A DNA stretch of 64,000 bases from Pavona decussata (GCA_977016875.1 CDRNST010000115.1:248001-312000); one strand, 5' to 3'; positions 1-53,183 are shown, counted from the first letter of the stretch. Numbers and translations are program-made. The notes: generated from the letters alone by a model not told the origin.

Positions 1-11
1 AATTCGTAGCC

Positions 12-839
12 ATGTATCTGTTCATCAAAGTGAAGGGGTCACGTCCTATGACTTATCAATATTTGATGGTGGACATGATTGATGCAGCTAAGAAAAAGGG
101 TGGATTCATTGATCAGAAAACGTTCAAGACTGCCGGAAAGTATGGATTTGATTCTTTGACTCTTTCCGACGCAAACATGCAAGTGCTCAATGGCTATATC
201 TCGTACGTTAGACCTTTGCTTAAACCCAAGTGTGATTTCGTTCTCGTCAACAGAAATGGAGGCCAGCATGGTAAATTGGGCGAGATCATGAGCAAACTGG
301 TGTTTGATGCAATTGGAAAGTACATCCATCCCACGCGTTATCGCCAAATTGTTGAAACGCAGAGCCTCAACCAGCTCACTAGCGAAGAGCAGAGGATTTT
401 GTCGGAAGACCAAAAACACAGCTCTGCCGTTGCTAAAGTTCACTATCAAAAACAACGATCCCGAGAAGTTGCTTTGAAGGGTCACGAGTGCCTACAGAAA
501 CTACAAGGCGCCAAGGGGTCAGAAGTGGACGAGGACGTCAACGCAAGACTCGGCGATTCAACTTCCACCGCCGGGCCTTCTGTTGAACCAGTGGAAAATG
601 TCAACACCTCCCCCAAAAAGGACGCCCTGCCTAAAAGAATCTTGCGCTCTCAGAGGAACATTCGTCATGTTTTGAAATTCACAGCAGAAGAGGACTATTT
701 TCTAAAGGAAGGAATAACTAAGCACGGATTTGGACAGTGTACAGCGATATTGAGAGATCTAGATTTCAGGTTTCAGGAGGGTAGAACTGCCGATTCTCTT
801 AAGAAAAGGGCTGCCACGAAAATGCCGTTGAGCGAATAA
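12..839 (+). CDS. Tyrosine recombinase catalytic domain fused to a C-terminal Myb/SANT (TRF/telobox-like) domain; N-terminus probably lies upstream of the window
   Basis: Catalytic residues in order: R (GSRPM), K (FKT), HxxR (HPTR), H (QKHS), Y (KVHY). The C-terminal FTAEEDYFLKEGITKHGFGQCTAIL...RTADSLKKRA resembles the TRF Myb motif W..EE...L..GV.KYG.G.W..I...RT...LKDRW. The frame is open back to the window start. Confidence 0.8.
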   Translation: MYLFIKVKGSRPMTYQYLMVDMIDAAKKKGGFIDQKTFKTAGKYGFDSLTLSDANMQVLNGYISYVRPLLKPKCDFVLVNRNGGQHGKLGEIMSKLVFDAIGKYIHPTRYRQIVETQSLNQLTSEEQRILSEDQKHSSAVAKVHYQKQRSREVALKGHECLQKLQGAKGSEVDEDVNARLGDSTSTAGPSVEPVENVNTSPKKDALPKRILRSQRNIRHVLKFTAEEDYFLKEGITKHGFGQCTAILRDLDFRFQEGRTADSLKKRAATKMPLSE

Positions 840-1105
840 AACAACAACAAAAACACTGCAAATGTAGTCAACGACGCAACCTTCATTTTAATTCTCTCTA
901 TGTCTCTCTTTTGTTTTTTTTTCAATGGCCATTTTCTATCACCATTCACAAACACACTGATGTATATAATGTAATAATAATTTTTTCAAGTCGACCTAGC
1001 TTAACCGTACATGTTCCAGTTCCAACCGTGTGTGTAATTACCCAAAAACAAACTCTAGCATTCATTTTACATTTTCGCTGTGTTTCGGTGTTTCTCTATA
1101 TCTAA

Positions 1106-3499
1106 CTACTGGCTAAAATAGCTCAGAATTGTTTTGCGTGGCTTCTTGTTCCTGACTAGAGTTAGTTCTCCAGACGTGGGTCTTTTTCGCGAAGTACTGG
1201 TCCGCATGAGGTCCTCTGAAATGGCAAGATCGTGCATGGTAGACGAAGTTGGTGTAGTTGCATCGCAGGGGCTTAGCTGCGTACTCGGGGCGGGCGTGAT
1301 GAACATTTCCTCGTCACTGCTGTCTCCGCACTGAGGTGGAACATCCTGCGATACAGCTGTGTTGCTTCTGTAGCCCGAGGAAGATGCTTCGTTGCCATCT
1401 CTTCCGGTCCGGATCGACTGGCACACATCCTCTGCAATGGGCAGGCACTGGAAGAGGCTGGTGACAAGATGCCTGTGTTCTTTCTTCAGTAGGCCCAGGG
1501 CAACAGACGATCGCTTCCTCTGGTCCAAGGCCAACTGGCAACCGGCCGTTCCGTGATTCTGGTGGAATTGTCTCAGCTTGTCTTGCAGGACCTCGCGGTA
1601 GGCCTCCGTGGACGCCCTCCTCTCCCGACTCAGGGCTGATCCCTGTAGTGTCCTGGCGAGCTCGTGAAGTTCGTGCTCCGTCTGTTGTAACCAGGGTGTT
1701 TGAAATGCAGCAAGTGCTCTCTCTCGCCTTGTCTTCAAGTCTTCCCGAAGGGTCTGTTGCCTGAAGGCAGCCAAGTCCTCGCTGATTTGCGTGGGCATGG
1801 GTTCCAATGCATCCCTCGGAAGCAGCGCCACATGTTCGCTTGCGACGCCCATCGACAGGAGATTTCGCTGTCTGTGTCGGTACACCGTCTCCTCTGCCTG
1901 CCTCTGTCTTTCCCGCTGGTCGAGTCGTGCTTGCAACATGACGGAAACTTGGCGGTGGCGGAGTGACCTCTGAGAGCTCTGCTCCATAATTCTCCTTAAT
2001 GCACCGATGGTCTGGTCGTCTTGACTTGAGTCCAAGTCCTCCTGAGTGTTTTCTATTGCACCGCTCTGTGCACCCGCCTCGACAGTTGGGCAATCGCGCT
2101 CATCTAGGACATTGTCCAAGCACAACGTGCGAAGCTCTTCCTTTTCCGTCGCTCCCAGTACATCATCGTCCGCGCTATCTTCGTCACTTAGCTCATCCTC
2201 GGTGGCTGATGCCACGCACCTACTGGCTTGTGCTGCTGCCCACACAATGCACTCCATTGGGTGTCTTCTTAGCCATTTGGCGGCTCCTTTCTTTGGATGC
2301 GGGAGACTCTTGAAGTTGTAATTTCGAAGCCTGCGGTCCATTGCGGGTTGGTCTTCAGGCTTGAACTGCAATTTCGTTTGTGCCGTCAACAGCATGGGGC
2401 AGCGGTTGATAAAGGACTTTGCGGTCTGGTACTTAACGTCGCATGCGGTGTAGCCCCCTTGGGTCAAGATCTTCCAGTCGTCGATGTCCATGCTTGACGG
2501 CGAGGCCTCGTCAATGAAGACCACTTCGGTGGATTTTGTGATCATGGCCTTGTTGAATACCCTTTGCTTTGTGATAGTCGCTATGTTGGTGTGGTGCACA
2601 AGCCCGAGGATAGGATGGAAAAGGCTGGTTTTGCCGCTATTTGCATCACCAGTCAGGCACTGTACTCTATCCTTGTGGCCTTTCTTGTTAAAGTTTAGAA
2701 GCTTCAAGAAATCCTCACAAAATTCACTAATTTCCACTTCTGAGAGGCTGTTCTCTAGAATTTCTTTGAAGTATTTGGGGTCAGGCTCTTCACCCTGATC
2801 GTACTTCGTGAAAGCTCTCGGGGTGATGATGCCGATCTTTTCATCCGGAATCGGGTTCTGCACAAAACACCTCTCCTTGATGGACCAGCAGTATCCGCCA
2901 TTTACTTCGATCAGATTGTAATCGATGGAGATAGGACGCACCACCTCGCAGTCTGGGTCCGAAAGTATGTCAATTATTTTTCTCATGTCCTTAAGCAGTC
3001 AGAACTCGTTTGCTGCCAGGCTATTTATGAATGCGCGGACTTCGCACTTGTAAGCGTAAGTGTACATGGCCGAGGGAAGTTTCTTGTAAACTTTTCCACA
3101 AAAGAGGGCGTATTCCATTTTCTTCATCGCGATTCCTATGTCATTTACGAGCACAGTCAATTTATCCGCCAGTCTTGCTTCTTCGTCTGCACTTTGCCTG
3201 CTGTCCTCTTGAAAACCAAACATATCAATTTCCAACTTTGCATCTTGAAGCTTTGTGATGGACAACCGCAACGTGAAGCTGAAAGTCGAATTTGTGAGCC
3301 AGACTCTGGTCACCTTCTCTGTTCCACAATCTTGCGAGTCCATCAAGTTCCCTTCACCCAGCACACTTTCCATCTCATTTCGGAAGCAATGTTCATACGA
3401 AGAGTTCACTAGTTCCTGGATCATGGGATTTTTGTGATCTTTTAAGACCTTGAATAGTTCTTTCATGACAGCCGACTCCTTGCCCTCATAACAGGGTAC
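1106..3499 (-). CDS. SF3 (D5/primase-associated type) helicase, main exon, with one in-frame stop at 2999-3001
   Basis: Walker A GDANSGKT, Walker B VVFIDE, motif C-like MLLTAQ, and arginine-finger-like AMDRR. ORFs 2999-3466 and 1106-2986 are in the same frame (..AAC GAG TTC TGA CTG CTT AAG GAC ATG..). A candidate acceptor ttcgcAG sits at 3501-3500. Confidence 0.8.
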
Positions 3500-3808
3500 C
3501 TGCGAATAGAATTATTGCAAATCCATCAATTTGGTTTTATGGAACTGTTAGAAGATTAAGTGTGTTGACTAATTTTTCTGTTTGGAAATGTCTCGAAATA
3601 TTGAATAGTGACTTTGAATGGTCCAACTCGATCATAACTCATTTCTAAACGATGGATTTTCGTGATTTTTTTTTTTTTGTTATGTCCAAATGGTAATCAG
3701 CAATACGCCATTAAAACGGAGAGAAAACATGGCCTCAGTTCGAAATATACTACCCATCTCATCATACAGTGCTTTCAAGAAACGCTGTTAAAATAAACAT
3801 TCACATAC

Positions 3809-4119
3809 CTGTTGTGCCATAGTCTCCACGCCGCATTCCAAGAGTGCACGGTGAATGACAATAGGGTTTGCCGGGGCACCATTTGGAGTAGTTAAGGCTA
3901 TCCAGTAGTTGATGGATGGGCATAATTTGCCATTGATGATTGTTTGATGTTCAGAAATCCAATCTTGACTTGCAGCGCTTGCTGCTTGACTGGATGTCAA
4001 TACTTCGTCATTGTTTTCATCGCTTGCATATTCCTCTGCAGTGGCTCCCTTTTTTCCTCGGCTTTTTCTGGGACCTTGGGCACCGATAGCGCCAAAGAAA
4101 AATGCGACGTTTTTCACTC
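3809..4119 (-). CDS. Probable upstream exon of the helicase gene
   Basis: Open frame bounded by a polypyrimidine acceptor (tttcttaacAG, 4121-4120) and a donor CAG|GTATGT at 3808. Confidence 0.45.
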
Positions 4120-4659
4120 CTGTTAAGAAAAAAACCGACCATTTTTAAGCAACAAGACCTTTTAAAATTCAAAGACAAGATGGTCATCAGATATGCAGAT
4201 TCTTACCACAAATTGCCTTATCGCAAACATCTCTTGTCTTACACACGTTGTTCCAGGCTTTCTGTAGGCCTCCTTCGTCTATTTTACAAACACATTGAGC
4301 TTTCACTATCCTACACTTCCCAACGATGATGGGGCTAATGAAGCATAAAGCTGAGCTCTTTATGGCCTGGCTGTTGAGTTGTCTACAAGGATATTTTGTC
4401 TTGTTCATGTTCAGTGTAGTGATTTCTTCCCAGAGTAGGCCCCTATTTTATACGAAAATTTATTTGTGATAATCACGAGGAATATATTTAAAAGTCAAAG
4501 GAAACTGATAGAAGTGTTTGATTTGAGGTACAAATGAAAAATGCCACGTCCCTGTCGTGTTTAGTGTAATTATTTTCAGGTCTTGTTATATTGTCGCAAC
4601 AAAGAAGCCTAATTACTGGCGAAAAACCTTTGAAGTATTCAAGGTCAAGGTCGAGCTTG

Positions 4660-5831
4660 TTTTCGTAGCTCTGATGTAGATCACATAACGCAAAACAAAA
4701 CGATTGAAGAAACAGGTGTTGTTGTAGTTCGTTAGTCTCCATGATACACTGCTTCCATTATTTTCACATGATAATACGTAGCAATTAGCAGTCGAACTCT
4801 ATTGAAGCAGCCCAAGTTTAATTCCCCGTTTATTTCACATTGGTTACGGTCTTAACTATGCATCGCACATCAAGAAATAAATGTCTTGATTACTAGGTGC
4901 AGAAGTTGTTAATTGCACTTTTTCATGACAAAAGGGGTAACAATCATCTGGTACCGTCAGGGTCGTTGGTAGCCATGTTGTCACATTTCGAAAAAAAGTT
5001 GACAATGACAATTTGTCCATGAATCTAAAATCACTGGGTGAAGGTTTTTTGTCCGCAAATACTGTGAAATCCGCCCTATCTACAGTTTTCTTCGAAGAAC
5101 AAGAGCTTCCACTCTCTGACAATGTGCTAGTTTACCAGCAGAACATTTTTCACGGAACTGTTAGATAAATGTTATTTATAGTCCCTTTTCTAATTGTAAC
5201 TGTCTTCCAATGAACATTATAAGACATCTTCAGTGTAAAAGCGAAGTATTAAGTCATATTGCATTTTCATAGCTCTGATGTAGATCACAGAAGGCAAAAC
5301 AAACGATTGAAGCAACAGGTGTCGATGTAGTTCGTTAGACTCCACGACACACTGCTTCCATTACTTTCCCATGATAATAAGTATCAATCAGCAGCCGAAC
5401 TCTATTAAAGCAGCCCAAGTTCAGTTCCTTGTTTATTTCACATTGGTTACGCACTTTACTAAGCATCGCACATCAAGAAATAAATGTCTTGATTACTAGG
5501 TGCAGAAGTTGTTAATTGCACTAATTCATGACAAAAGGGGTAACAATCATCTGGTACCGTCAGGGTCGTTGTTGATCATGTCACATTTCGAAAAAAAAGT
5601 TGACAATGACAATTTGTCCATGAATCTAAAATCACTGGGTGAAGGTTGTTTTGTCCGCAAATACCGTGAAACCCGCCCTACCTACAGTTTTCTTCGAAGA
5701 GCAAGAACTTCCACTCTTTGACAATGTGCTAGTTTACAGCAGAATTTTTTTCATGGAACTGTTAGATAATTGTTGTTTATAGTCCTTTTGCTAACTGTAA
5801 CTGTCTGCCAAATGAACATTATAAGACATCT
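4660..5831. repeat. Direct duplication of about 600 bp (4660-5229 and 5264-5831)
   Basis: Long near-identical blocks. Both start tttc(g/a)tagctctgatgtagatcac and end aatgaacattataagacatc. Confidence 0.9.
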
Positions 5832-5869
5832 AAAAGAGAGGTATTAGGCCATATTGCATCAGTCATGTT

Positions 5870-6775
5870 ACGCAAAATCCGTGAAATCCACCCTAACACC
5901 ACAGTTTTTTTGCTGGTCTTTGAACTTCCAGTTTGAAGTGGCAGTTGACAGGCTGATATCTTTTTCTTAAATACGGCGGAGTTTACGGATTTCACGGATG
6001 TTTAGAATAAGCATGATTTAAAACTTCCTTCTTTAACTGCAAGGATCTTACATATCTTATAATATATTAATATATTCTCTTCTTAGATACTTACAGTTTA
6101 AAAGAGGAGTATTAAATGACATTCGAATGTATGATTTCCGTAAAATCCGTGAAATCCACCCTAAATACAGTTTTCTTGCTGGTCTTTGAACTTCCAGTTT
6201 TGAGTGGCAGTTGACAGGCTGATATCTTTTTCTAAAATACAGCGGATTTGACGGATTTCACGGATATTTGGAATATACATAATTTAATACTTCCTTTTTT
6301 ATCTGTAAGTATCTAATATATATTACATATATATGATATATTAATATATTCTCTTTAAAGATCCTTACAGTTTAAAAAAGGAGTATTAATTGTTATTTGT
6401 ATGTACAATTTCCGTAAAATCCGTGAAATCCACCCTAACTAGAGTTTTCTTGCTGCCTTTGAACTTCCAGTTTGAAGTGGCAGTTGACAGGCTGATATCT
6501 TTTTAAAAATACGGCGGATTTTATGGATTTCACGGATATTTAGAATATATGCATTATTTAATACTTCCTTTTTCAACTGCAAGTGTCTTATATGTATTGT
6601 AATATATTAACATATTCTCCTCTTAGATATTTGCAGTTTAAAAGAGGAGTATTAATTAAATAACATTTGTATGCACATTTGTACGTACAGTTTTCTTGCT
6701 GGCCTTTGAAGTTGCAGTTGACCTGCTCATTTGTTTTCTTAAATACGGCGGATTTTACGTATTTGGCGGTTTTCT
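5870..6775. repeat. Tandem array of about 270 bp (3 full units plus a partial) with internal inverted repeats
   Basis: Units start cg(c/t)aaaatccgtgaaatccaccctaa near 5871, 6138 and 6413. Each contains the inverse ggatttcacggat and an AT-rich hairpin. Confidence 0.9.
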
Positions 6776-7296
6776 GAGAGTCCCTTTCAAAAAGTGAACT
6801 TTAAACTAAGAGAGGACTGTTTCGGGCCTCTTTGTTCGTTCTCAGAGTTCCAAGGAAATCTATGAAATTGGTGCTTTTAAAATCAGCAAGCAAACTCAAC
6901 GAAAATCAAAAGCACTCCAGACGTAATGTTTGCCATCATTTCTGTCCAACTACACTGCTAGAAACAGATGAGAAACATTACGCCAAGATATTTTCCTCAA
7001 AAAATCACAGGGAACAGAANNNNNNNNNNNNNNNNNNNNNNNNNNNNNNNNNNNNNNNNNNNNNNNNNNNNNNNNNNNNNNNNNNNNNNNNNNNNNNNNN
7101 NNNNNNNNNNNNNNNNNNNNNNNNNNNNNNNNNNNNNNNNNNNNNNNNNNNNNNNNNNNNNNNNNNNNNNNNNNNNNNNNNNNNNNNNNNNNNNNNNNNN
7201 NNNNNNNNNNNNNNNNNNNNNNNNNNNNNNNNNNNNNNNNNNNNNNNNNNNNNNNNNNNNNNNNNNNNNNNNNNNNNNNNNNNNNNNNNNNNNNNN

Positions 7297-8345
7297 TGAA
7301 TCTTTCAGTTGCTTTTTAGCTTCTTCATATTTATTTAAAGTATTGGTGTCAAGGCAATTATCGTTACATATTTTCCGGTCTAGTTTGTTGATTTCATTTT
7401 GCAATTCTATTTCTCTTTGTTTTGTTTCTCTCCTTTTCTTCTTGGAGTAGGTAATAGTGGAGGCGCGAATTTCCATTTTAATCATTTCCCAAAGTAATCG
7501 TTTATTTCAAGATCTTAATACTTTTCTAAAATTTCTGGATATGTCCTGCTCACAAGTTGAAGGTAATTTTCCTCCTCCAGCAGCTGGTTGTTAAATTTCC
7601 AGGAGCCTGGGCCCCGTTTGAAATCTCCTTCAATTTCTAGAGATAAAAAAAGCCCTGTGTTCAGGGGCAATAGACGCGCGGATTTCCGCGTTTTTCACAT
7701 TAGCAGTCATTGGGTTGGAGATAAAAGAGATAATCAATTCTCAATTTCACCTTTAAGCTTTTGGACTCATAAGTGAAAGCTCTAGTGTTCGGATGAAGTT
7801 TACGATAAATATCATTTAGGCCAAATTCTTTCATAAGGCTAATGATCGAGTTTCTATATCCTGTTTCTCTCCAAGGAAGGCCACCTGCTTTATCTTTTGG
7901 CGTTAAAGTACAATTCCAATCTCCTGTGATTATTAATTTTGTAATATCTGTTTTAGCTATAGGATCAGGTACTGAATTTTTAATAAGAGTCAGTTTTTCA
8001 TTGTGCTGGTTTGGTACATAGACATTGACCACAAAAAGTTCTTAATCACCCACTTTAAGTTTAGCTATAATGTATCTACCATTTGGATCACTGTAAATAA
8101 TATGAAGGCTGAAAGGAGCGTTAGATTTCAAAAGGATACATACTCCCCTTGAGTTTTCTGACCCATGAGCAAATAAAGTTTGTCCTCCCCATTCCGCAGA
8201 CCAGATATTTTCATCCTTTTCGTTTGAGAAGGGTTCCTGAAGACAATGTAGTGTCGCCTTTTGGTTCTTTAAATATGAAAAAAATTCCTCTTCGTTTTTT
8301 TACTCGTGGATATGCTTTAGCATTCATGAGTGTTAGGGGCATTCC
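7297..8345 (-). pseudogene. Tx1/L1-type LINE ORF2 endonuclease region, frameshifted; runs into the gap
   Basis: Motifs VNVYVPN, IITGDWN, DIYRKLHP..AFTY, RIDY, GPGSWKFN, WEMIKMEIR. Confidence 0.8.
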
Positions 8346-8948
8346 GTATGCAAATGAATCACTCACTCCAGTGTAACCAGAAGTGGAATAATAGCCAATC
8401 CCACATCGGAAAGAAGCGACAGCCAGAAATACGTCTGCGATCGCAGGTTAGATTTTTGTGGGTCGCCATTGCATGGCTATTTTTTAGTGCTTTGAATGCA
8501 TTCTCGCTGCATTCTCCAACATAAGAGGCAAGTGGCTGAAGAAGTGACAAAATAGTGTTCTTCGAAGGTGAAGCAAAAGATTCTCAACAAATGCACATTG
8601 ATACAATTAATAGCGATTGTGCACCGCCTCCACTCATCGAGGCGTAAATCGGACTAACTCTTGATGTCGAAGTCGAATCGACGGTAGGTGGGAAGAGAGA
8701 AGTTTGTGACCTTTTGTAATATTCTGAGTCCATTAAACCAGCCAAAGTTAGAGAACACGACTGCTTTTAATTCTAACCGTGGACAACGTGTTTTATCCGA
8801 ACTGTTCTGCTGGAAAACTACTGGAGGAGCGGTTACAAAGCTCACAACATTCCACACTCCCCCACTAAGTCATGAAAACTATCACAATAAATCAACAACA
8901 AAATTAGCTTGCAGTTCTTTAGTGTCTCAGTCCTAATAACCTAACAAA

Positions 8949-10349
8949 TCACTTAGTAACAAAATCAGCCAAGTATCGAGGGGCGTGTCTGTTCCTGGTA
9001 GGGTAGCGTTTTTCTGGGACACCTTGGGGAGCAGACTGCACAGGCTCAATCACTGCTGCTGGGGTGTCTTGACTGCTGGTCGGAGTTTCTTCCACCTGTA
9101 ATTCTGGCTTTTCAGCTTCCACCGATGCTGGAATCAGGGCAGCTGGGACTTCCTCTTGATTAGGAATAGACGCTTGGAGAACACTGGACCGCTGTATCAG
9201 ATGGTCTTGGTGTCTTCTCAACAGTCGTCTTTACCCCAATGCCAACAAGTCTCGTTACGTAGCAACCCATGTAGTGGAGCCAACACACTTGAGAAGTTGG
9301 GCAGAAATTTCTGGTAGTAGTTTATCATGCCCAGGTACGATCTGAGCTCTGACACATTCGTAGGTGCTGGTGCATTGGTAATAGCATTGACCTTGTCTTG
9401 CAACGGTTTAATGCCTTCCTTGCTGACCTTGTGCCCCGAGTAGGTTACTTGAGGTTCCATGAACACACACTTGTTTTTCCGCAGTCTTAAGCCCGCGCTT
9501 GCTAGTCGTTTCAAGACTTCTTCCAGGTTGTTTAAGTAATCTTCGTCACAGGCTCCGCACACTAGTATGTCATCCACCCGGACGATTACATAACGAATGC
9601 TCCGCAGTAAATTCTCCATGTTCCGCTGAAATATTCCTGGTGCTGATGATATTCCGTAGGGCAGAGGGTTGTACTGGAACAATCCTTTGCGTGTGTTGAT
9701 AATGGTTTACTGTTTGGACTCTTTATCCAGTAGTAATTGCTGATAGGCCTGACTCATGTCCAGTTTAGTGAATTTTTCACCTCCTCCTAGAGTTGCAAAG
9801 AGATCTTCAACCTTCGGGATAGGGTAACTGTCCAGCTTAGACACTTGATTGACAGTTGTTTTGTAGTCTCCGCCGATACGAATGGAGCCGTCTGGTTTTA
9901 GGATAGGTACAATGCGGGCCGCCCATTCAGAGAACTGAACAGGTTCGATTGTTCCCTCATCTTGCAGCCTTTTGAGTTCAGCCTCAATCTTCCCTGTCAT
10001 GGTGGATGGCACTGGTCTCGCATTCAAGAACTTCGGTTTTGCCTCTGTTTCCACATGGATCTTCGCCCTCGGGCCTGTGAATGTTCCAAGTCTTTCTCGA
10101 AACACTTCCGAGTACTGGTCGATCAACCTTCCAAACGAAGACTCGTGGTTGTTTTCGTCAACTTGGATTGTGAACAGCTCCTTCCAGTTGAGTCTCAGAA
10201 CTCTCAACCAGTCCCTTCCCAGCAAGTTAGGCCCTGATCCTTCCACTACTAGTGTTTGCAGTTCTACTTCTTGCTTCTCATAATTTACAACACCGTTCAC
10301 AGTTCCTAAGACCTTGACTAATTCACCTGTATACGTTCGGAGCTTTACT
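8949..10349 (-). pseudogene. pol: Gypsy pol (protease/RT; RNase H and integrase core deleted)
   Basis: KLDMSQAY, LPYGISSAPGIFQ and VDDILV. The sequence jumps from WHWGK to the integrase C-terminus RRHQDHL...RYPTRNR. Confidence 0.85.
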
Positions 10350-11366
10350 TTAACGGTTCCCATTATGCGGTCGATTCTTCCCAGAATTTCCATCAATGAT
10401 TCTCTTATAGGTTTCTTCATTGATGACCGTAGCTGCAGCGCCGGTGTCCACTTCCATACTTGTCTGAACTCCGTTTAGTTGTAGGTCGACTCGATACGGT
10501 TCTCTTTCCTTTGCTGCTAGGTGAAACATCGTGTATTCTTCGCATTCTTCCTCTGCCTCTTCTGATGTCTCCAGGCGATGTGTGTTTCCAAACTTGTTGC
10601 TGTTTTGAAAACTCATTTTACGTTTACTGCGACACTTGTTCGCTTTGTGACCCTTCTTACGGCATCTATAGCACTCTTCTTCTTTATACCTGCACTTATC
10701 GGCATCATGAAACTGGCCTCCACAACGATAGCATTCTTTTGATTGCCTCGGGTTCCTTGGCAGCTGTTTTTGTTTCAGTGGCTCCTTGGTCACGCGGTGA
10801 ACTTGTGGTTTTTTCGGTTTTTCGTTCAAATTCCCTGCATTCCCGTGCTTCAGATCACGTGTATTCCTGTCGGCGGTTTCCATCGCGTTGGCTAATTCCA
10901 TCGCCTTCTTGAATTCCAGTTGACTTTCCGCCAGTAATCTCTGCTGTATGCATTCATCATTCACGCCACAAACCAGTTGATCACGAAGCATTTTCTCCAG
11001 TTGGTCATTGAATTCACAGTGCTCCGATAAATTCCTCAGTTCGGCGACATATTGTTGTATTGTTTCTCCCGGTTTTTGAAAACGGCTGTTAATTTTGAAC
11101 CGATAGACGATTGAAGAGGGTCTTGGATCTAGGTGATTCTTCACCAGGATGACTAACTCTGTAAACGACTTGTCGGTCGGCTTCCTTGGATTTACCAAAT
11201 TCCTGATTAACTTGCAAGTTTTTGCTCCACATGCGCTTAGCAGTACCGCTCGCTTCTTGTTGTTGTCCATAATTTCATTCGCCGCGAAGTAATGCTCGAG
11301 TCGTTCGGTGTACTCGATCCAGCTCTCGCTCTCGTTGTATTCCTCAATTTTCCCGATCAATGCCAT
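10350..11366 (-). CDS. gag: Gypsy gag plus protease start
   Basis: MALIGKIEEY start, two CCHC knuckles (CYRCGGQFHDADKC, CYRCRKKGHKANKC), protease motif VDTGAA. Confidence 0.85.
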   Translation of the reverse strand: MALIGKIEEYNESESWIEYTERLEHYFAANEIMDNNKKRAVLLSACGAKTCKLIRNLVNPRKPTDKSFTELVILVKNHLDPRPSSIVYRFKINSRFQKPGETIQQYVAELRNLSEHCEFNDQLEKMLRDQLVCGVNDECIQQRLLAESQLEFKKAMELANAMETADRNTRDLKHGNAGNLNEKPKKPQVHRVTKEPLKQKQLPRNPRQSKECYRCGGQFHDADKCRYKEEECYRCRKKGHKANKCRSKRKMSFQNSNKFGNTHRLETSEEAEEECEEYTMFHLAAKEREPYRVDLQLNGVQTSMEVDTGAAATVINEETYKRIIDGNSGKNRPHNGNR

Positions 11367-13739
11367 GTTTTGATCCGTTCCTCGTCGCCCATGTAATATT
11401 CTGAGTCCATTAAACCAGCCAAAGTTAGAGAACACGACTGCTTTTAATTCTAACCGTGGACGACGTGTTTCATCCGAACTGTTCTGCTGGAAAACTACTG
11501 TAGGAGCGGTTGCAAAGCTCAGAACATTGCACACCTTTCATGTGTTGTTGAATTATCCGTTGAATTTCCGTTAACTACAGGCACATACGAATAATTCCGC
11601 TACGCTCAAGACGAAATAATTGAAAATTTTCTTTGCCGCACGCGAGTCGCGTCGGGGTACGGAAATATAATTGTTGACCATTGTAATCAGTGACTTAATT
11701 ATTTTCTGCTTCATTTTCCCGTAGAAAAGCCAGAGATTTGAGGATCACAGTTGCCTTTCAACACCGTTTAGCAATACTTTCACTATTAATATCTGTTAGA
11801 CAAATTTGCATATCCGTGATTACGGTAAAATTGTGCGTCTCTGATATTTTCATTTCCTTTGGCAGATTTTCATTTAAGTCAGGGAATCTTAACTTTCTTT
11901 GGCTTTCAGTGCACTTGCCGTTTTCCAGAGCCGTTAGCTTTCCATTCGGTACCTGTCCGTTGTTTGATGGATTACTTTACCTTACGCAGCGAAATCATTT
12001 ATTGCATCCAAATCGCTTTTGGTAAGCTTTGCGAACTACGACTGAGGGACATGAGCATGTGAATGTTAGTGTGCATATGTTCATCTGGTGAAGTCACAAT
12101 TTAACTTTTTAATTCGAGTCTTTTCTTGTCATTAATTTATTTATTTATTTTCATTGTGTTTTACAAAAACATGACAAGCTTTTAATAAACTGATATAATT
12201 CAGGAAGTGTTTTGTTGCTGCTTTAAAATGACCAAGATATAAAAAATAAATGCTACAGTTGTCGGAAAGCCATTTACATGTAAGAATAATAATATGAGTC
12301 TCCTTCACAAATAGGGCCTTGTGCCTTGTGTGATCGAGGCCTGAAACGCAAACTCTTTAAACTCAAACCTATGCATTCTACCAAAAATATCCTGAAATTC
12401 TGGTACAAAATCAACATGGAACGGCAATTTTCAAAAAAGTCAGTTCGTTACGAAATCTTTTGGCATTTCATTTCGATCAGACACTCGGCTCTAGCTACTC
12501 CAGCAGCGATCAACATTATTTACAAATGAAATGTGTTTCCGTCTTACTTAACCCCACATGCTTAAGAATTCTTTCCCCAAGGTGTTTGCTTTGATAACGA
12601 AGAAAACATTGCTCCTTCCATTGATTAGTCGTCGGGTAAGTCGAAAACAAAGAAGTGAAAATAAAGTTGATGGAAAGTTCTGTTTCTTAAAACTGTAAAA
12701 ATGCACTTACAACTCCATCGACATTGTGTAAGAACAGAATCATCCTTTGACGACGATTACCAGCCCTTTGAGGTTGAACGAAGGAATATCAAGGGATAAT
12801 GAGCACCAGGCACAGGGTGATGTGTTGCGCTCGGATTTCTAGATCACGCCATCTAGGGCTCGCATTTTTGAAAAACTAGTTAAAGTCTCGGCCTCGGAAT
12901 TTAAACGAGAGTCTCGGCGGGCCTTGAATTTTTCCACTATACCCCCTCTGGAAATATGTCACTTAGGTCAACCCCCCTTCCCCACTGAAAACTAGTTTAG
13001 GCAGACTGACCACCTCCCCCCCTGGAAAATCAAATCCCTTCTATGGGACGGGTGGGGGGATATCGATATTTTTTGGAACTAAACATTCCGTTTACCGTAA
13101 TCCAGCCCTTAAAAAATCCAGAATTAAAATTGCTTACCTTTATATCTGGTCATATAGGGCAAAGAAATCATTCCACCAGTATTAAAAGTCTTTCATTTGG
13201 TGAGGGACTGGGAACATCCACCCCAAGGAAAAAATGGGAAGATAGGAGGCAGCCACAAACAGCTGCATAACATTTGAATCCTCAAAACCAAAAAAAAAAT
13301 GATGACGCCTCCCCCAAGGACATAGCCAAAATTTGCCTTCCTTGTTTGATTCCTCCTTTACCCAAATACCTCAAATTTTTGTGAGGCTAACTCAAGTCTA
13401 AGTGGAAATCTGCTGCCCAGGCTGTCAAACCCTGACCCTGTTTATGACAAAAATATTAGCACCGTATCTTGTTTATGACATGAATTAATTTTTCGAAAAA
13501 GAAAAAAAATATGTAATGCGTTTTAACAATTTGTAGGTAATCAGAGAAAAATAGACGCATTCCTTCCCCCCACCCACCCTCCATGAGGGGAAAACGCGTG
13601 AAGAGCCCTAAGAGTCATCATCACTATTACATTTCAAAGACCATTCTAAACTATTACAAATTAAAGCCACCTTTTAGTTAAGCCCATGGCATCAATGGCC
13701 ACTTCCATCGCCATATCCACGAGTTAACGATAGTGTCAC

Positions 13740-46876: not shown

Positions 46877-48946
46877 TCAGTTAACATAGAATTCAGAGCA
46901 TATGATGTGTGGTAAAAGAAATGCTTTTTCTAGCTGATCTTCCGTCAGATTAAAATCCCGTTTTAAAGCTGAGGTATTTTTAGAAAGCTGTGCCTTTTTA
47001 CTTATGAGCAATGAATAATAATCTTTTGATTTCTTCTTTAAAATATCAAAATCGTTATTCTTAATTATCACGGAGGGTGGCATTGTGAAAAAGGTGTGAT
47101 CAGTTGTTCTAGAATTAACTTTCAAGTGGGACGGTACAGCATGTCTAAGACCTGCCCATACTAAGAAATTGGTTTTTTCAATCTTTCTTATAATGATACT
47201 ATGCGACTCTGCAATACTTAAATCCAATCGAAGATCGGAAACCAGAAGAAAACCATTGTCGAAAAATGTTTTGTAAAGAATTGGCTTATTATTTATCCTA
47301 ATGTCTTTATTATTCCAAATAATATTATACCGCATTTTATCTGTAGAAAAGTCGTCACGAAAATCGACCCACCATTGAAGCAGCTCGGAGTAAAAAGGTG
47401 ATTTGATTAGAACGTCTTTTACATCATAGTTACAATGAAATAGAAAGAGGCCCCCGAAACTTTTAAGTTGATAACGCAAGTAATTCTTCCATGTGCTGTC
47501 GTTTTCGCTGAAGATTCTCTTTAGCCAGGCAAGTCTTAAAGATTTGACCATCGTCTCTAGGTCAATCATTTTCAAACCACTTTTTTGGTAGTCATTTATT
47601 GTTGACAAACGTGTGACCTTGTCAACACCTCTCCATAGGAATTTAAATATCAATCTGTTCAATTCTTGAACCGCCCACTCTGGAATTGTTAATAATGATG
47701 CCACGTAAACAAATTTTGGAACAATCAACGATTTGATAACAGTAACCTTTCCATAAAGGGAAAGACCTCGCGCAGACCATATGTTTACCAATTTTTTCAC
47801 GCTGTCTAGTCTTTCTATAAAATTTTTCTCGTGTAGTAATTTTTGATCATAGGTGTAATAGACTCCGAGAGCTTTAATTGGTTCATTTGGCCATTTAATA
47901 CCAAAGGGTTTTGATTTATTTTCCTTTAATGATCCGATCCACATTGCTTCAGTTTTTGTGGGATTAACGGCTAAACCTGAAATCCTCTTAAAATCGTCTA
48001 ACAACCTGAAAAGGGTTTGCGCTGAGTCGATGTCTGACAGAACCACAGTTGTGTCATCTGCGTATTGTAGTAATTTTGTTTCCTTCTTGTCAATAGTAAT
48101 ACCTTTTATCATTGGATTTTGTCTTATTGCGATAGCCAAGGTTTCAACAGCTACTACAAAGAGATAAGGAGAAAGAGGATCTCCTTGCCAAACTCCTCGT
48201 TTGACTGTAAAGTAATCAGAGATTGTGCCATTGTTGATAACACAGCTTTGTATATTATTGTAAAAAGAAGAAACCCATCTAATAAAACTCTGGCCGAAAT
48301 TAAAAGATTCTAGACAACTTTGTAAAAAGCTGCGTTCTAAACTATCGAAAGCCTTCTGAAAATCGATAAAGATCAACAAACCAGGAATGTTTTCTTCAAC
48401 AGTGAAGTCCATTATGTCAAAAATCGATGGTACTGTTTCGCCGATATAGCGGTCTTTTATAAATCCAGTTTGATTGTAATGGATGATGCTTGGCAGAACA
48501 TTTTGTATTCTAGCAGCTATAGCTTTAGCCATAATTTTCGCATCCACATTTACCAAAGATATCGGCCTCCAGTTTTCCAAAAAGGATCGATCTTTTCCTT
48601 TCTTTTCGATGAGCGTAATTACTGTTTGCTTTTGAGAGCACGACATTTCACCTTTTTCGAAGCATTCATTAGAACAGCGAATGAAAGGCTCACAAAGTAA
48701 AGGCCAAAATTTTTCATAGAATTCGATGAGAATTCCATCGTTCCCTGGAGTTTTATTGTTTTGGAAACTGTCCAAGATAAGTGCGCATTCTTCGGGAGTA
48801 ATTTCACCTTCACAAGACATTTTTTGTTCTTCTGACAGTTTAGGAATGTTTAAATCTTTTAAAAAGGATTTAATTTCGTGCAAATTTTCGTTATTCATGT
48901 TCCTACTCGAGTACAATTCTTGATAAAAACGTTGTTGTTCGGACAA
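46877..48946 (-). CDS. LINE ORF2 reverse transcriptase portion
   Basis: KTPGNDG, NWRPISL, IDFQKAFD, QGDPLSP and YADD. Confidence 0.9.
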   Translation of the reverse strand: MSEQQRFYQELYSSRNMNNENLHEIKSFLKDLNIPKLSEEQKMSCEGEITPEECALILDSFQNNKTPGNDGILIEFYEKFWPLLCEPFIRCSNECFEKGEMSCSQKQTVITLIEKKGKDRSFLENWRPISLVNVDAKIMAKAIAARIQNVLPSIIHYNQTGFIKDRYIGETVPSIFDIMDFTVEENIPGLLIFIDFQKAFDSLERSFLQSCLESFNFGQSFIRWVSSFYNNIQSCVINNGTISDYFTVKRGVWQGDPLSPYLFVVAVETLAIAIRQNPMIKGITIDKKETKLLQYADDTTVVLSDIDSAQTLFRLLDDFKRISGLAVNPTKTEAMWIGSLKENKSKPFGIKWPNEPIKALGVYYTYDQKLLHEKNFIERLDSVKKLVNIWSARGLSLYGKVTVIKSLIVPKFVYVASLLTIPEWAVQELNRLIFKFLWRGVDKVTRLSTINDYQKSGLKMIDLETMVKSLRLAWLKRIFSENDSTWKNYLRYQLKSFGGLFLFHCNYDVKDVLIKSPFYSELLQWWVDFRDDFSTDKMRYNIIWNNKDIRINNKPILYKTFFDNGFLLVSDLRLDLSIAESHSIIIRKIEKTNFLVWAGLRHAVPSHLKVNSRTTDHTFFTMPPSVIIKNNDFDILKKKSKDYYSLLISKKAQLSKNTSALKRDFNLTEDQLEKAFLLPHIICSEFYVN

Positions 48947-49131: not shown

Positions 49132-50302
49132 ATGCCTGAGACCTCGGATAAATCTGAGCTTAAGGGCGAGAAAGACAACTTAAAAAGGAAAAGTAGTGGC
49201 TCTAGAAGCGAACACATTGAAGCAAATGTTAGAATCATCGAAAGAGGTGATGGCGCCGATGGCGCCAAAACTGACTCATATGGTTTACAAGAGCTTGCCG
49301 CTACGCTGAGACAGGGTTTCACCCAGATGTCTCAAGATTTATCCAAGACTATTGCTGAGTCGTTCAAACAGTTTCAGTCAGACTTTGAAATACAATATGT
49401 TGACACGGAGGAAGAACAGGAGGCAAAATCTGCTGAGAATGACCACGAGGTCAGCGAAGACCCCCCCACGAAGAAGAAGCGAGATGACAAAACTACGAGC
49501 TTAGAGGAAGCTGTGACAAAGCTGGCTGACTCAGCCGGGGCTCAAAAAATGCCTTCTAATGAAGGAAAATTTGAGGTACTTAACAGCTTGAAACAAGAGC
49601 TGAAGAAAGAGGAAACAGGCCCAAGTGTAAACACAGAGCTGGGGAATGTAGTGAATGCCATGCTCAAAGAAGGGCTGCCTGAAGAGAAACTTCAGGAAAA
49701 GTTGAACAAGTATCACAGACCAGAGAACTGTGATTTTTTGACAAAAGTACGAGTCAATCAACCAGTATGGGACCACCTTACTCCAACAGTCCGGCCCCAA
49801 GATGTTAGACTGCAAAAGGTGCAGACATCCATCTTCAAAGGAATGTGCGCGTTGACAAATATGATCGACAAACTCCTCGAGCACTTGTGGTCACTCCCAG
49901 CGGGAAACGACCTTCTTCAAAAGTCAACAGATGCACTTACATTGTTCGCTAATGCAAACAGTGAACTCAATCAAAGACGAAAGGGAATTTATTAAACCGG
50001 ATTTACATGAGGAATACAAACATCTTTGCTCCTCGTCGGTTCTGATCACTGACCAATTGTTTGGCAATGATCTCCCGAAACAAGTGAAAGAATTGACCGA
50101 GGTCAATCGAGTGGGAAAGAAAGTCTCCACACACAGTGGTCGATCAACGAACAAGCCTGATTATCACAGGCACAACTCTTACACACATAGCTGCGGACGC
50201 TCAGGAAACCAACATTACAGGAAGCCTTTTTTAGGCTCGTGGAAAAACGACCACAAACATCCTCCGAACTTCAAGAGGAAGAAGGAGGGGAAGTCAAAAT
50301 GA
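49132..50302 (+). CDS. DIRS gag-like ORF1 with one frameshift near 49981
   Basis: YHRPENC, VNQPVW, DVRLQKVQ, ELNQRR/EFIKP and DQLFG. Confidence 0.8.
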
Positions 50303-52395
50303 ATCAGACTGCTAACAACGTTGAGGTAAGAAATGTGTCAGAGCAATCTATTAAAATTACAGGTGGAAGACTGAAACAATTTACCTCTCAGTGGCAATGC
50401 ATAACCTCAGATCCTTTCATACTTAATAGTGTGAAAAATTATAAAATTGAGTTTGAAAATGGAGAGCCAATGCAGTTTATGCCACCAAAAGAAATAAATT
50501 TTACAAAACCAGAGCAGGAGGTCATTGACAATGAAATTGATAAACTGCTGACCAAAGGTGTGATTTCAGAAACCACACATTGCCCTGGTGAATATATTTC
50601 TACTATATTCATACGCCCTAAGAAAGATGGAGGGTTTAGATTAATTCTAAATTTGAAGAATTTGAATGAACATGTGGAGTATCAACATTTTAAGATGGAT
50701 ACCTTACAATCGGCAATAAGGCTTATGACTCCAAACTGTTATATGGCCTCAGTAGACCTGCCTGACGCATACTACTCAGTGCCAATTCACAAAGATGATC
50801 AAAAATATCTGAGGTTTTGCTGGAAAGGTAGATTGTTTCAGTTTACATGTTTACCAAATGGTCTGGCTTGTGCACCCCGACTCTTCACAAAAATCCTTAA
50901 GCCAGTGTATGCTACGCTGCGCCAGAAGGGTCATCTAAATGTAGGCTATATTGATGACTCTTATTTACAAGGGGAGAGTGTGGAGGACTGCCAAGCCAAT
51001 ATTAATGATACCTGTGACTTATTTTCAACATTGGGTTTTATCCTACATCCTGATAAGTCGGTCTTACAGCCAGTTCAAGTCCTTACATTTCTGGGATTTG
51101 TCTTGGATTCAGTTAATATGACTGTCTCCTTAACACAGGAAAAAATCCAGCGCATAAGGGAAAGATGCAAGAAAATGATGGAGCTTGTTGAGCTCCCAAT
51201 CCAGGAACTAGCTAGCTTTATAGGGCTTTTAGTGTCAAGTTTTCCTGGGATCTTATATGGACCACTGTATTATAGACAACTTGAGAGGGATAAAACTACA
51301 GCCTTAAGACAAAACTATGGCAATTATAATGCTCAAATGAGATTATCCCAAGAAAGCTTTTCAGAGATAAAGTGGTGGTATGATAACATACAGACCAATA
51401 ACTACCCTATATTATTGCCTAATTCAAAGGTTGATGTAATAATTTACACCGATGCATCAACTAATGGATGGGGAGCTGTCAAAGAGACAGAGAAAATAGG
51501 AGGTAGATGGTCAGAGGAAGAAGCAAAATATCACATTAATTGTCTGGAGCTGTTAGCTGCAAATTTTGGACTTAAGGCATTTTGCAAAAATGAGCAAGGC
51601 ATTCATGTTAAGATTTACTCTGATAACTCTACAACTGTGAACTATATTAAAGCTATGGGAGGTGTACATTCTAGGGAATGTCACACTATTGCTAAAGATA
51701 TTTGGCAGTGGTGCATAGAAAAACAAATATGGTTAACAGCTGCTCATATCCCAGGGACAAAAAATGTTGAGGCAGATCGGGAATCACGCGTTTTCTCAGA
51801 CAACAAGGAATGGATGATAAGATCTGATATTTTCCAACAGATCACAGATATCTGGGGGGAGCCCTCCATAGATCTCTTTGCATCCAGACTAAATCATCAG
51901 GTTCCATGCTATGTATCCTGGAAACCTGACCCAGGGGCAGCCTTTATTGATGCATTTTCTGTAACGTGGGATAAACACTTGTTCTATGCTTTCCCTCCTT
52001 TCAGTTTAATTGCAAGATGCCTACAGAAAATACAAACCGATTGTGCAGAGGTATTGATGATAGTTCCAATGTGGCCAACCCAGAGTTGGTATCCCAAACT
52101 TCTTCGCATGTTAGTGGCTGTTTCAAGAGTGTTACCACAACAACGAACTGCCTTACAAATGCCAGGGATCCCACAAGAAGTCCACCCCCTATTCAGGAAA
52201 ATGGTTCTGATTGCATGCAGATTGTCCGGCAGTCCTATGAGACACAAGGAATTTCTCAAAAGGCAACCTCCATCATCTTACAGTCCTGGAGGAAAGGAAC
52301 TACAAAGCAGTATTCATCTTACATCAAAAGATGGACTACATATTGTCATAAAAAACAGATTGATCCAGTTTCTGCCACTGTCCCACAGGCACTAG
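50299..52395 (+). CDS. DIRS RT - RNase H - DNA adenine methyltransferase-like protein
   Basis: RT motifs DLPDAY, LPNGL and YIDD; RNase H motifs TDAS, INCLEL, SDN and EADRESR; methyltransferase motifs IDLFAS and YAFPPF. Confidence 0.9.
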   Translation: MNQTANNVEVRNVSEQSIKITGGRLKQFTSQWQCITSDPFILNSVKNYKIEFENGEPMQFMPPKEINFTKPEQEVIDNEIDKLLTKGVISETTHCPGEYISTIFIRPKKDGGFRLILNLKNLNEHVEYQHFKMDTLQSAIRLMTPNCYMASVDLPDAYYSVPIHKDDQKYLRFCWKGRLFQFTCLPNGLACAPRLFTKILKPVYATLRQKGHLNVGYIDDSYLQGESVEDCQANINDTCDLFSTLGFILHPDKSVLQPVQVLTFLGFVLDSVNMTVSLTQEKIQRIRERCKKMMELVELPIQELASFIGLLVSSFPGILYGPLYYRQLERDKTTALRQNYGNYNAQMRLSQESFSEIKWWYDNIQTNNYPILLPNSKVDVIIYTDASTNGWGAVKETEKIGGRWSEEEAKYHINCLELLAANFGLKAFCKNEQGIHVKIYSDNSTTVNYIKAMGGVHSRECHTIAKDIWQWCIEKQIWLTAAHIPGTKNVEADRESRVFSDNKEWMIRSDIFQQITDIWGEPSIDLFASRLNHQVPCYVSWKPDPGAAFIDAFSVTWDKHLFYAFPPFSLIARCLQKIQTDCAEVLMIVPMWPTQSWYPKLLRMLVAVSRVLPQQRTALQMPGIPQEVHPLFRKMVLIACRLSGSPMRHKEFLKRQPPSSYSPGGKELQSSIHLTSKDGLHIVIKNRLIQFLPLSHRH

Positions 52396-53183
52396 ATTTT
52401 TTAGTGGAGCTATTTGAGTCAGGCATCGGTTACAGTGGTATTAACACTGCAAGGTCTGCTCTATCCAGTGTCTTAAAGCTTGTGGATGGGATGATTTTTG
52501 GAGCACAAGAGAGTGTCAAGAGGTTCTTAAAAGGAGTTTACGAAGCAAGACCCTCCAACCCAAGATATACTGAGACATGGGATGTGAGCAAGGTTCTGAA
52601 CTATCTTAAGACAATCTCTATTACAGACTGCTCACTAAAGGATCTGACTTTAAAATTAGTCACTTTTATGTCATTAGTATCAGCTCAACGGGTGCAGACA
52701 ATTCACTACTTGTCTTTGGAGGACATGGTTGTTTCAGAAACTTCTGTGACTTTTATTATCTCCGGGCCTATTAAACAGTCTAAGCCAGGGTTGAAACCCA
52801 CTGTTGTTAAGTTTGTAGCTTACCCGGACAACCCTAACATTTGTGTTGTCACTACCTTGAAGGCATATCTTAATCGTACCTCTTCTTTACGTGGACGTGC
52901 ACAACAATTGTTTATTAGTCATTACAAGCCATTTAAACCAGTTTCCCGGGACACCATCAGTAGATGGGTCAAAGCTGTAATGCAAAAGTCAGGAATTGAT
53001 GTAAACCTTTTCAAGCCCCACAGTACTAGGGCTGCCGCAACATCTGAGGCTTTGTTGAAATCTGTACCATTAGAGCACATCTTATCAGTTGCAGGATGGA
53101 GCTCATCTGACACTTTTGCAAAGTTTTATAGCAAGCCTGTTATCAACACAGATAGCTTTTCTAACGTTTTGTTACAAGAGTAA
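52017..53183 (+). CDS. DIRS tyrosine recombinase
   Basis: SAQRVQ, HSTRAAATS and AGWSSSDTFAKFY; overlaps the RT ORF as is typical. Confidence 0.9.
   Translation: MPTENTNRLCRGIDDSSNVANPELVSQTSSHVSGCFKSVTTTTNCLTNARDPTRSPPPIQENGSDCMQIVRQSYETQGISQKATSIILQSWRKGTTKQYSSYIKRWTTYCHKKQIDPVSATVPQALDFLVELFESGIGYSGINTARSALSSVLKLVDGMIFGAQESVKRFLKGVYEARPSNPRYTETWDVSKVLNYLKTISITDCSLKDLTLKLVTFMSLVSAQRVQTIHYLSLEDMVVSETSVTFIISGPIKQSKPGLKPTVVKFVAYPDNPNICVVTTLKAYLNRTSSLRGRAQQLFISHYKPFKPVSRDTISRWVKAVMQKSGIDVNLFKPHSTRAAATSEALLKSVPLEHILSVAGWSSSDTFAKFYSKPVINTDSFSNVLLQE

Follow-up and report, generated by a model that had tools for sequence, protein, structure and literature searches.

The first 7 kb of a 64,000-nucleotide stretch of the genome of the coral Pavona decussata (GCA_977016875.1, CDRNST010000115.1:248001-312000; in the following, the window) probably represent a single copy of a cnidarian mobile element that is autonomous and capsid-less, comprises two genes and moves by the mechanism proposed below. 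The visible stretch of this copy (positions 1-7019, the left part lying beyond the window edge) contains the 3' part of a gene for a tyrosine recombinase (YR) ending in a Myb domain, a gene for a helicase apparently of superfamily 3 (SF3), convergent with the former and separated from it by exactly 266 bp between the two stop codons, and two related repeat arrays (arrays A and B; table 1). An earlier note, made from this DNA alone, had already recognized these parts as a candidate undescribed element, and its placement of them stands. Two of its details require correction, namely the right-hand limit, set there at position 6775 while the element extends at least to position 7019 at the edge of an N run, and the helicase gene, taken there as a 626-codon open reading frame (ORF), which is longer, is divided into three exons and contains one in-frame stop codon.

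The evidence that carries this reading comes from the relatives of the window copy. A single scan of metagenome contigs from coral holobiont samples with the helicase alignment yielded 80 related loci, and the linkage of the two genes was counted in those 32 loci whose sequence continues for 600 bp or more past the helicase gene. A convergent YR gene is found downstream of the helicase, on the opposite strand, in 26 of these 32 loci, with a median gap of 331 bp between the two protein matches, and the six loci lacking the YR partner are copies whose helicase match ends early. On the other side, 61 of the 80 loci also contain the N-terminal helicase exons upstream. Overall, 215 helicase homologues, with a main exon typically of approximately 780 amino acids, and at least 1025 homologues of the YR fragment were collected; when the YR profile was run against a library clustered at 50% identity, 1710 matches were obtained at E ≤1e-3 and 299 at E ≤1e-30. 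The named sources are stony corals (Oculina, Acropora, Montipora and Desmophyllum), the anemone Actinostola and the jellyfish Rhopilema, i.e. Anthozoa and Scyphozoa, and many of the homologues are fragments. Judged from these sequences, the family is cnidarian-wide and multi-copy. The window taken alone, with its single incomplete copy beside an assembly gap, might suggest a chance adjacency of two repeats, an assembly artefact or a host gene pair, an explanation rendered extremely improbable by the linkage, orientation and spacing kept in so many loci and lineages, by ends common to the copies, by flanks that differ from copy to copy and by homologues that number hundreds to thousands and are often fragmentary. 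Indeed, linkage, orientation and ends exceed by far what chance would produce, and a fortuitous pairing is refuted by the conserved linkage and the common ends.

Complete copies of 7.6-8.2 kb were recognized in four instances (L026, L031, L042 and the second copy of L058), as the alignment of copies, a check suggested in the earlier note, allowed the termini to be defined. Their order is that of an inverted end, an arm with tandem palindromic repeats, the three-exon helicase gene, the convergent gene for the zinc-finger/YR/Myb protein, a second arm and, finally, the other inverted end. No further conserved ORF lies within the bounds of the complete copies, the arms showing similarity at the nucleotide level only and no convincing third gene. 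Capsid, packaging ATPase, protease and DNA polymerase B (polB) genes were found neither inside the ends nor in the flanks, no structure-based capsid search of the small arm ORFs having been made, and no HUH, Pif1 or reverse transcriptase (RT) match was found inside the element. The copies are flanked by unrelated host repeats (BEL/Pao, DIRS), whose ORFs encode Pao peptidase, DUF1759 and the RT and YR of a DIRS element, and by a host-like ORF with a fibronectin type III (fn3) domain. The view of the earlier note, that the element lacks capsid and polB genes, is thus supported.

The ends themselves are informative. The first bases of the left end are the 9-mer TCGTTTCCC, of which exact matches lie upstream of the helicase gene in approximately 20 loci, as opposed to one or two expected by chance. 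The right end, ...GGGAAA(C/T)GT, has a sharp limit, identical in L024, L026, L034 and L048 and at both occurrences in L058, and beyond it copies that are 98-99% identical continue into unrelated flanks. The two ends are mutually inverted repeats over 15-16 bp. At the head-to-tail junctions of L006, L034 and L058, the right end is followed by exactly 6 nt and then by the left end, and two copies in L003 are found 28 nt apart within one GA tract. Across the junction, 8-bp inverted arms (GGGAAACG / CGTTTCCC) surround an 8-bp spacer, T-(A/G)GA(A/G)GA-T, so arranged that the layout of a lox/FRT-type site is obtained, at which binding and cleavage by the YR are predicted. The spacer differs among copies that are otherwise 99% identical, as it would if the crossover took place within it and each time with a different target.

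The sequences next to the ends indicate what these targets may be. At single insertions, each of the 16 distinct left flanks has GA or GAA as its last bases; in eight of them, which are tracts of the (GAA)n or (GGA)n type, purines make up at least 80% of 24 nt, a composition reached by 1.3% of random 24-mers. Similarly, the credible right junctions start, in 11 cases out of 11, with a 6-mer that ends in GA or GAA. Taken together, ends, junctions and flanks fit well with YR-mediated integration of a circular form into GA-rich microsatellites, with tandem build-up at sites already used; such sites seem to attract further copies, or else dimers integrate. The view of the earlier note that the YR-Myb gene, the helicase gene and the repeats make up one integrating animal DNA element is supported. 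As a separate observation, the left flank of L024 (L024:70-350) is an inverted copy, 94% identical, of part of the left arm of the element (compared with L026:929-1199), and could be either a rearranged arm or the product of chimeric metagenome assembly at repeats.

The Myb-bearing protein can be assigned with confidence, on the basis of its model, to the tyrosine recombinases, with the two-domain fold made of a helical core-binding domain and a catalytic domain. It was the structure that settled this identity because the sequence libraries detect only the Myb domain. The AlphaFold2 (AF2) model of the relative P0241, built on a 40-sequence alignment, has a mean predicted local distance difference test score (pLDDT) of 87, and its Foldseek matches in the PDB at E ≤0.001 are all XerA chains (down to 2e-5), with lambda Int, Cre, XerH and XerD among the further matches (prob 0.94-1.00); in a viral library, the annotated matches are integrases, YR-domain proteins or VLF-1. 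The full-length proteins of L031 and L012 are 559-588 amino acids long and consist of an N-terminal C2H2-like motif, the core-binding domain, the catalytic domain and the Myb domain, in this order. In an alignment of 40 diverse members the motif R..K..(H)xxR..H..Y is conserved, the individual residues being retained as follows: R and K in 40/40, the second R in 37/40 with an adjacent R in 40/40, H in 39/40 and Y in 35/39. All the candidate catalytic residues are present in the visible part of the window YR. The Myb/SANT-like domain corresponds to the last approximately 50 residues; PF00249 is matched in 29 of the 40 members, with 24-31 bits in the relatives and 18 bits in the window copy (Pfam cutoff, 24.4), and a profile search against the PDB retrieved the Myb domains of TRF1 and TRF2 with E values down to 2.5e-4. 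Phage_integrase, DUF3504 and GCR1_C found no match in the 40 members at E values up to 0.05, and Phage_int_SAM_1 matched one of them (E=0.005). The hhalign alignment of the YR with the DIRS recombinase found elsewhere in the window is not significant. A divergent branch of the YR family (P0284, P0408-P0523) accounts for 362 matches, every one on contigs of at most 7.7 kb; these proteins could belong to integrated copies in poorly assembled samples or to free small replicons.

The assignment of the second protein to the SF3 helicases is moderately, not strongly, supported by its sequence. The window copy contains Walker A and Walker B motifs and, over the same stretch, weak and concordant matches to DUF5906, Parvo_NS1 and PPV_E1_C, all scoring under the Pfam cutoffs, while the intact relative P0001 reaches 29.5 bits with DUF5906 (cutoff, 27.6) and 20.0 bits with Parvo_NS1 (cutoff, 20). 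TIGR01613, the C-terminal domain of P4-family primases, is the sole NCBIfam match with E <0.01 and is itself weak; in PHROGs, the helicase finds two weak ‘DNA primase’ matches alone, and many of its relatives carry PF19263/PF00519 as precomputed annotation. The alignment shows Q instead of the usual N at the motif C position, and a primase domain was not detected in the element's helicase. An Oculina patagonica gene model (P0009) adds approximately 170 N-terminal residues, which match the two upstream exons of the window, the three exons having been compared and searched separately rather than as a joined protein. Neither in the N-terminal 400 residues nor in the N-terminal exons was a known Pfam domain found. 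The spliceosomal introns of this gene may be counted in favour of a nuclear life style. Downstream of the NTPase core, residues ~485-680 of P0001 form a long helical region, which is conserved across lineages and is the one part of the helicase modelled with confidence (pLDDT 80-90).

Both genes evolve under purifying selection as estimated where synonymous sites are not saturated, the ratio of nonsynonymous to synonymous substitution rates (dN/dS) being 0.10-0.13 for the helicase and 0.07-0.16 for the YR, and an uninterrupted frame is found in 16 of the 30 complete helicase exons. Copies 98-99% identical are found in different genomic contexts. The YR is far more conserved between lineages than the helicase; in the comparison of L002 with L026/L024, the nonsynonymous divergence (pN) is 0.11 for the YR and 0.35 for the helicase, which suggests that modules are exchanged between lineages or that the two evolve at very different rates.

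The arrays next to the helicase gene have features that recall replication origins. Arrays A and B share motifs of 30-34 nt, and the iteron-like motif of array B recurs once, in diverged form, in each unit of array A. The unit of array B is made of two imperfect palindromes, the first formed by two doubled 13-nt iteron-like motifs in inverted orientation, the second with 35-nt inverted arms around an AT-rich palindromic centre; the 13-nt motif has 12 matches in array B versus one in the remaining 63 kb of the window, and the unit, folded as single-stranded DNA, is predicted to form two long hairpins (z=-8.8). Counterparts of array B are found at the matching position of other copies with 70-78% identity, they are tandem as well in L008, L010, L023 and L038 (units of ~273-295 bp), and the copy number of the arrays varies among near-identical copies (e.g. 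L007 versus L008 and L010). The combination of iterons, palindromes and an AT-rich tract suggests an origin-like layout at the level of architecture, and the tie of the arrays to the gene pair appears weaker than that between the genes and the ends. In some lineages, a second tandem set with periods of 63, 126 or 189 bp is located upstream of the YR gene. The idea that the Myb domain reads telomere-like CCCTAA boxes was considered and discarded, as each 266-bp unit of the window contains one box but the boxes are not conserved in the L008 units.

From these elements a mechanism can be proposed, the integration part of which is well supported by the sequences and in which the YR would act on the 15-16-bp inverted ends. 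Once joined, in a circle or in a head-to-tail dimer, the ends would provide two 8-bp inverted arms around the 8-bp GA-rich spacer, and this site would recombine with a GA-rich microsatellite, (GAA)n or (GGA)n, leading to an insertion, each junction of which would keep a spacer with GA at its end; run in reverse, the reaction would release the circle. As to replication, the N-terminal part of the helicase may bind the iteron-like palindromes beside the AT-rich tracts and open the arrays as a replication origin for host polymerases, which would allow the circle to multiply before reintegration, while the TRF-like Myb domain might, speculatively, help the YR locate the DNA of the element or its target. 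In its full form, the proposal is that of a self-contained cnidarian integrative episome, with its own initiator helicase, iteron origin and lox-like system and no capsid, alternating between a replicating circle and GA-rich microsatellites; it is advanced here tentatively, as a possibility somewhat short of an even chance.

A more economical scheme would limit the element to excision and reintegration by the YR, without self-replication at any stage; the helicase would then have another purpose, such as remodelling of the recombination site or branch migration, and the arrays would be platforms for the Myb-recombinase, or promoters. In its favour, all the direct evidence concerns integration, the Myb domain is carried by the recombinase and not by the helicase, and the arrays differ strongly among lineages and are also found upstream of the YR gene (L031, L035, L042, L050). 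However, SF3 helicases are known to initiate the replication of small DNA viruses, of plasmids and of satellites and are not known as cofactors of transposition, the purifying selection on the helicase is as strong as that on the YR, the double palindrome with its AT-rich unit suits the architecture of an origin, and hundreds of copies are hard to explain by pure excision and reintegration, all of which makes this scheme rather unlikely.

Several observations weigh against an autonomous element that integrates and replicates as proposed. With respect to the two proteins, just 19 of the 40 YR members retain the first His of HxxR, and the YR catalytic domain goes undetected by Pfam, NCBIfam and PDB sequence profiles (phmmer and profile searches). 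The SF3 assignment rests on weak profile matches (E 1e-6 to 1e-3); the helicase is unmatched in PDB sequences and in phage genomes (BLAST), its AF2 model, based on a 10-sequence alignment, has a pLDDT of 48 and values <50 over the ATPase region, and both its activity and its binding to the repeats are predictions. As for the circular form, the head-to-tail junctions, which are the sole pointer to it, also arise from tandem integration, and neither a circular molecule nor a circular overlap was found among the contigs of the 80 related loci. Neither end of the element is visible in the window itself, and the left boundary is not the same in L024, L040 and L048, a discordance which suggests that repeats may have given rise to chimeric metagenome contigs. 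Finally, the core iteron-like motif is approximately 11-fold enriched in the arm of some lineages and absent from others, and array A, with its 602-bp units, appears to be specific to the lineage of the window, as no nucleotide match to it was found among the 80 related loci.

Corals carry many polintoviruses, and the element might also be conceived as a virus-derived satellite, using a co-resident virus for capsids and horizontal spread, or as a decayed small integrating DNA virus. The helicase core matches the virus hallmark families Parvo_NS1, PPV_E1_C and DUF5906, the divergent YR branch is confined to short contigs, and the family spans two cnidarian classes, all of which can be read in this sense. 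The same holds for the likeness to Polinton-like viruses (PLVs) and virophage-like protist elements (PMC4642659, PMC10120064), as a YR and an SF3 helicase form the replication-integration module of many PLVs (PMC4642659). The latter are, however, 14-40 kb in size, have a packaging ATPase and both major and minor capsid proteins as their defining features and live in protist hosts (PMC4642659, PMC10120064), whereas the coral element has an animal host, a spliced helicase gene and only 7.6-8.2 kb between its ends, which leaves no room for capsid genes. Its identification as a PLV, virophage or Polinton was discarded, complete copies being filled by the two genes and the repeats. A viral or satellite nature is, on the whole, improbable in view of the lack of capsid, packaging ATPase, protease and polB genes inside the ends and in the flanks, of the spliceosomal introns of the helicase gene and of the location of the element in host DNA of the usual repeat-rich kind; a link to a helper was not seen, viral contigs not having been scanned.

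The YR-mobilized DNA elements known from animals are either single-gene Cryptons or retroelements (DIRS, Ngaro), and SF3 helicases are known in animals from viruses. A literature search, with Repbase and Dfam outside the comparison, found no description of an animal element combining a YR with an SF3 helicase, in agreement with the suggestion of the earlier note that the element may be undescribed. Among the closest known systems are the Cryptons (Goodwin et al. 2003; Kojima & Jurka 2011, PMC3212892), which are likewise eukaryotic DNA elements with a YR as the sole recombination enzyme and no RT, are present in cnidarians, and have a presumed circular intermediate and short direct repeats at the junctions as the crossover region. 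Cryptons carry no helicase, as the earlier note had stated; the word ‘helicase’ occurs 0 times in the Crypton survey, according to which animal Cryptons have neither a C-terminal domain nor terminal repeats (PMC3212892). The coral element, in contrast, adds the SF3 helicase, the Myb C-terminus, the N-terminal zinc-finger-like motif, the 15-16-bp inverted ends and the arrays. Its classification as a Crypton was rejected on three counts: a second conserved gene under selection is linked to the YR in 26 of the 32 loci, while a Crypton is a single-gene element; the domains of the Crypton YR clades (DUF3504 for CryptonA, GCR1_C for CryptonF) are not matched in the 40 members, a comparison of domain profiles rather than a phylogeny; and inverted ends are present where Cryptons have none, even if short GA-ending direct repeats are also found at both junctions. 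No paper was found to support a reading of the RepeatMasker label ‘Crypton-H’ as a helicase-bearing Crypton. This name presumably derives from Crypton-Hc1.

Other systems share part of the design. The yeast 2-micron plasmid is a nuclear selfish DNA circle with a YR site made of inverted arms and an 8-bp spacer and with a tandem-repeat locus. It relies on FLP/FRT and on STB repeats, remains non-integrated, replicates from a host-type autonomously replicating sequence (ARS) without a helicase of its own, and is amplified by FLP via long inverted repeats. The P4-like satellites and archaeal integrative plasmids (PMC6563490), prokaryotic integrative replicons with a P4/D5-type primase-helicase, combine a YR integrase, an SF3 initiator, an iteron-type origin and a specific short target and are capsid-less, a logic proposed here for the coral element as well; they belong, however, to other domains of life, the coral target is a microsatellite and not a tRNA gene, and the sequence similarity is marginal. 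The crustacean endogenous nimaviruses, which were compared by description only, have a YR with a C2H2-type finger and a SAM-like domain that inserts into a simple repeat, and concatemer or episome-like junction reads have been reported for them (PMC10871703), but they are 300-kb viruses with full virion gene sets, and their target is (TAACC)n or 28S rDNA (PMC10871703). The DIRS element of the window differs in having RT, RNase H and methyltransferase domains and a YR that is detected by Phage_integrase at 36 bits; a DIRS, Ngaro or PAT identity was discarded in the absence of an RT inside the coral element. The same applies to Helitrons and Helentrons, with no HUH or Pif1 match found and an NTPase of the SF3 type.

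As far as the state of the window copy is concerned, the YR frame enters from the left edge and its visible part contains no stop codon or frameshift, the 5' ~290 codons of the gene and the upstream (second) arm lying outside the window. The helicase gene, whose stop codon is at 1106-1108, contains one in-frame stop, by which the single ~780-aa frame of the relatives is split into two pieces in the same frame; no frameshift is present in the main exon, which is spanned entirely by one tblastn segment. The copy is therefore mildly decayed, with this one in-frame stop in its helicase gene, and the lower score of its Myb domain relative to that of its relatives indicates that it may be decaying there as well. 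A motif search for the element end gave no match in positions 6771-7019 and 7297-9000. The last ~11 bases before the N run weakly resemble positions 15-25 inward of the relatives' end, with a score that is reached by 1-5 of 200 shuffles for two relatives, so placed that the end of this copy probably lies ~14 nt inside the N run. No second copy of the element was found within the window, nor any Rfam family by an Rfam scan. The remainder of the window contains a DIRS-like retroelement and fragments of non-long terminal repeat (LTR) and LTR retroelements (table 1). A long interspersed nuclear element (LINE) fragment adjoins the element without its expected 3' part, and is therefore interrupted by the element or by the assembly gap.

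Table 1. Features of the element copy in the window, of its surroundings and of selected related loci (window coordinates unless a locus is given).
Feature	Position	Strand	Basis or remark
YR-Myb gene, 3' part	1..839	+	278 codons + stop; stop codon 837-839
Myb/SANT-like (TRF-type) DNA-binding domain, C-terminus of YR	675..809	+	Pfam PF00249, TRF1/TRF2 Myb structures
Spacer (266 bp) separating the convergent stop codons	840..1105	.	ORF positions
Helicase gene, three exons	1106..4408	-	Oculina gene model, 215 homologues
Helicase exons	1106-3499, 3809-4119, 4207-4408	-	tblastn versus Oculina patagonica P0009
Helicase introns	3500-3808, 4120-4206	-	GT..AG borders, common with Oculina gene model
SF3-type P-loop NTPase core (Walker A, Walker B), probable	2330..2656	-	Pfam/TIGR profile matches
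Presumed promoter region, helicase start codon to first array	4409..4659	.	from position only
Array A, 2 x ~602 bp, 89% identity	4660..5867	.	repeat search
Array B, 3.4 x 266 bp, 78-84% identity, AT-rich	5868..6770	.	repeat search
Terminal stretch up to N run, end motif not visible	6771..7019	.	comparison with relatives' ends
N run (assembly gap)	7020-7296		
Non-LTR/LTR retroelement fragments	7297-11534, 46877-48946, 53552-54409	-	
Endonuclease-like stretch	7.3-8.3 kb	-	similar to 53.6-54.3 kb
RT fragments	9221-9682 and 46880-48946	-	
Gag-protease-like ORF	10353-11534	-	
DIRS-like retroelement	49132-53183	+	
DIRS ORF with RT, RNase H, Dam-like methyltransferase	50239-52392	+	
DIRS overlapping YR ORF	52017-53180	+	Phage_integrase 36 bits
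Head-to-tail or closely adjacent copies within one GA-rich tract	L058:1-9421; L003:360-400; L006:360-383; L034:7379-7458		
63/126/189-bp arrays in YR-side arm	L031:7265-7756, L035:5945-6433, L042:11026-11405, L050:5759-5917		

In the genomes of corals, anemones and jellyfish, members of the family are probably mis-annotated as genes for an ‘uncharacterized protein’, which affects both gene counts and repeat masking. Natural site-specific recombinases from animals are, to our knowledge, rare, and the YR described here is compact, is modelled with structural confidence and has a readable 8+8+8-bp site; the mechanism of the element can be read from sequence in its defined inverted ends, lox-like junction and microsatellite target. 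A high-copy, recently active, capsid-less element that combines a YR and an SF3 helicase would add a new group to the eukaryotic transposable elements and would sit at the boundary of transposon, plasmid and virus. If the integrative episome proposed here proves true, it would represent an unrecognized class of animal mobile elements, the eukaryotic counterpart of the integrative plasmids of bacteria and archaea and of the P4-like satellites.

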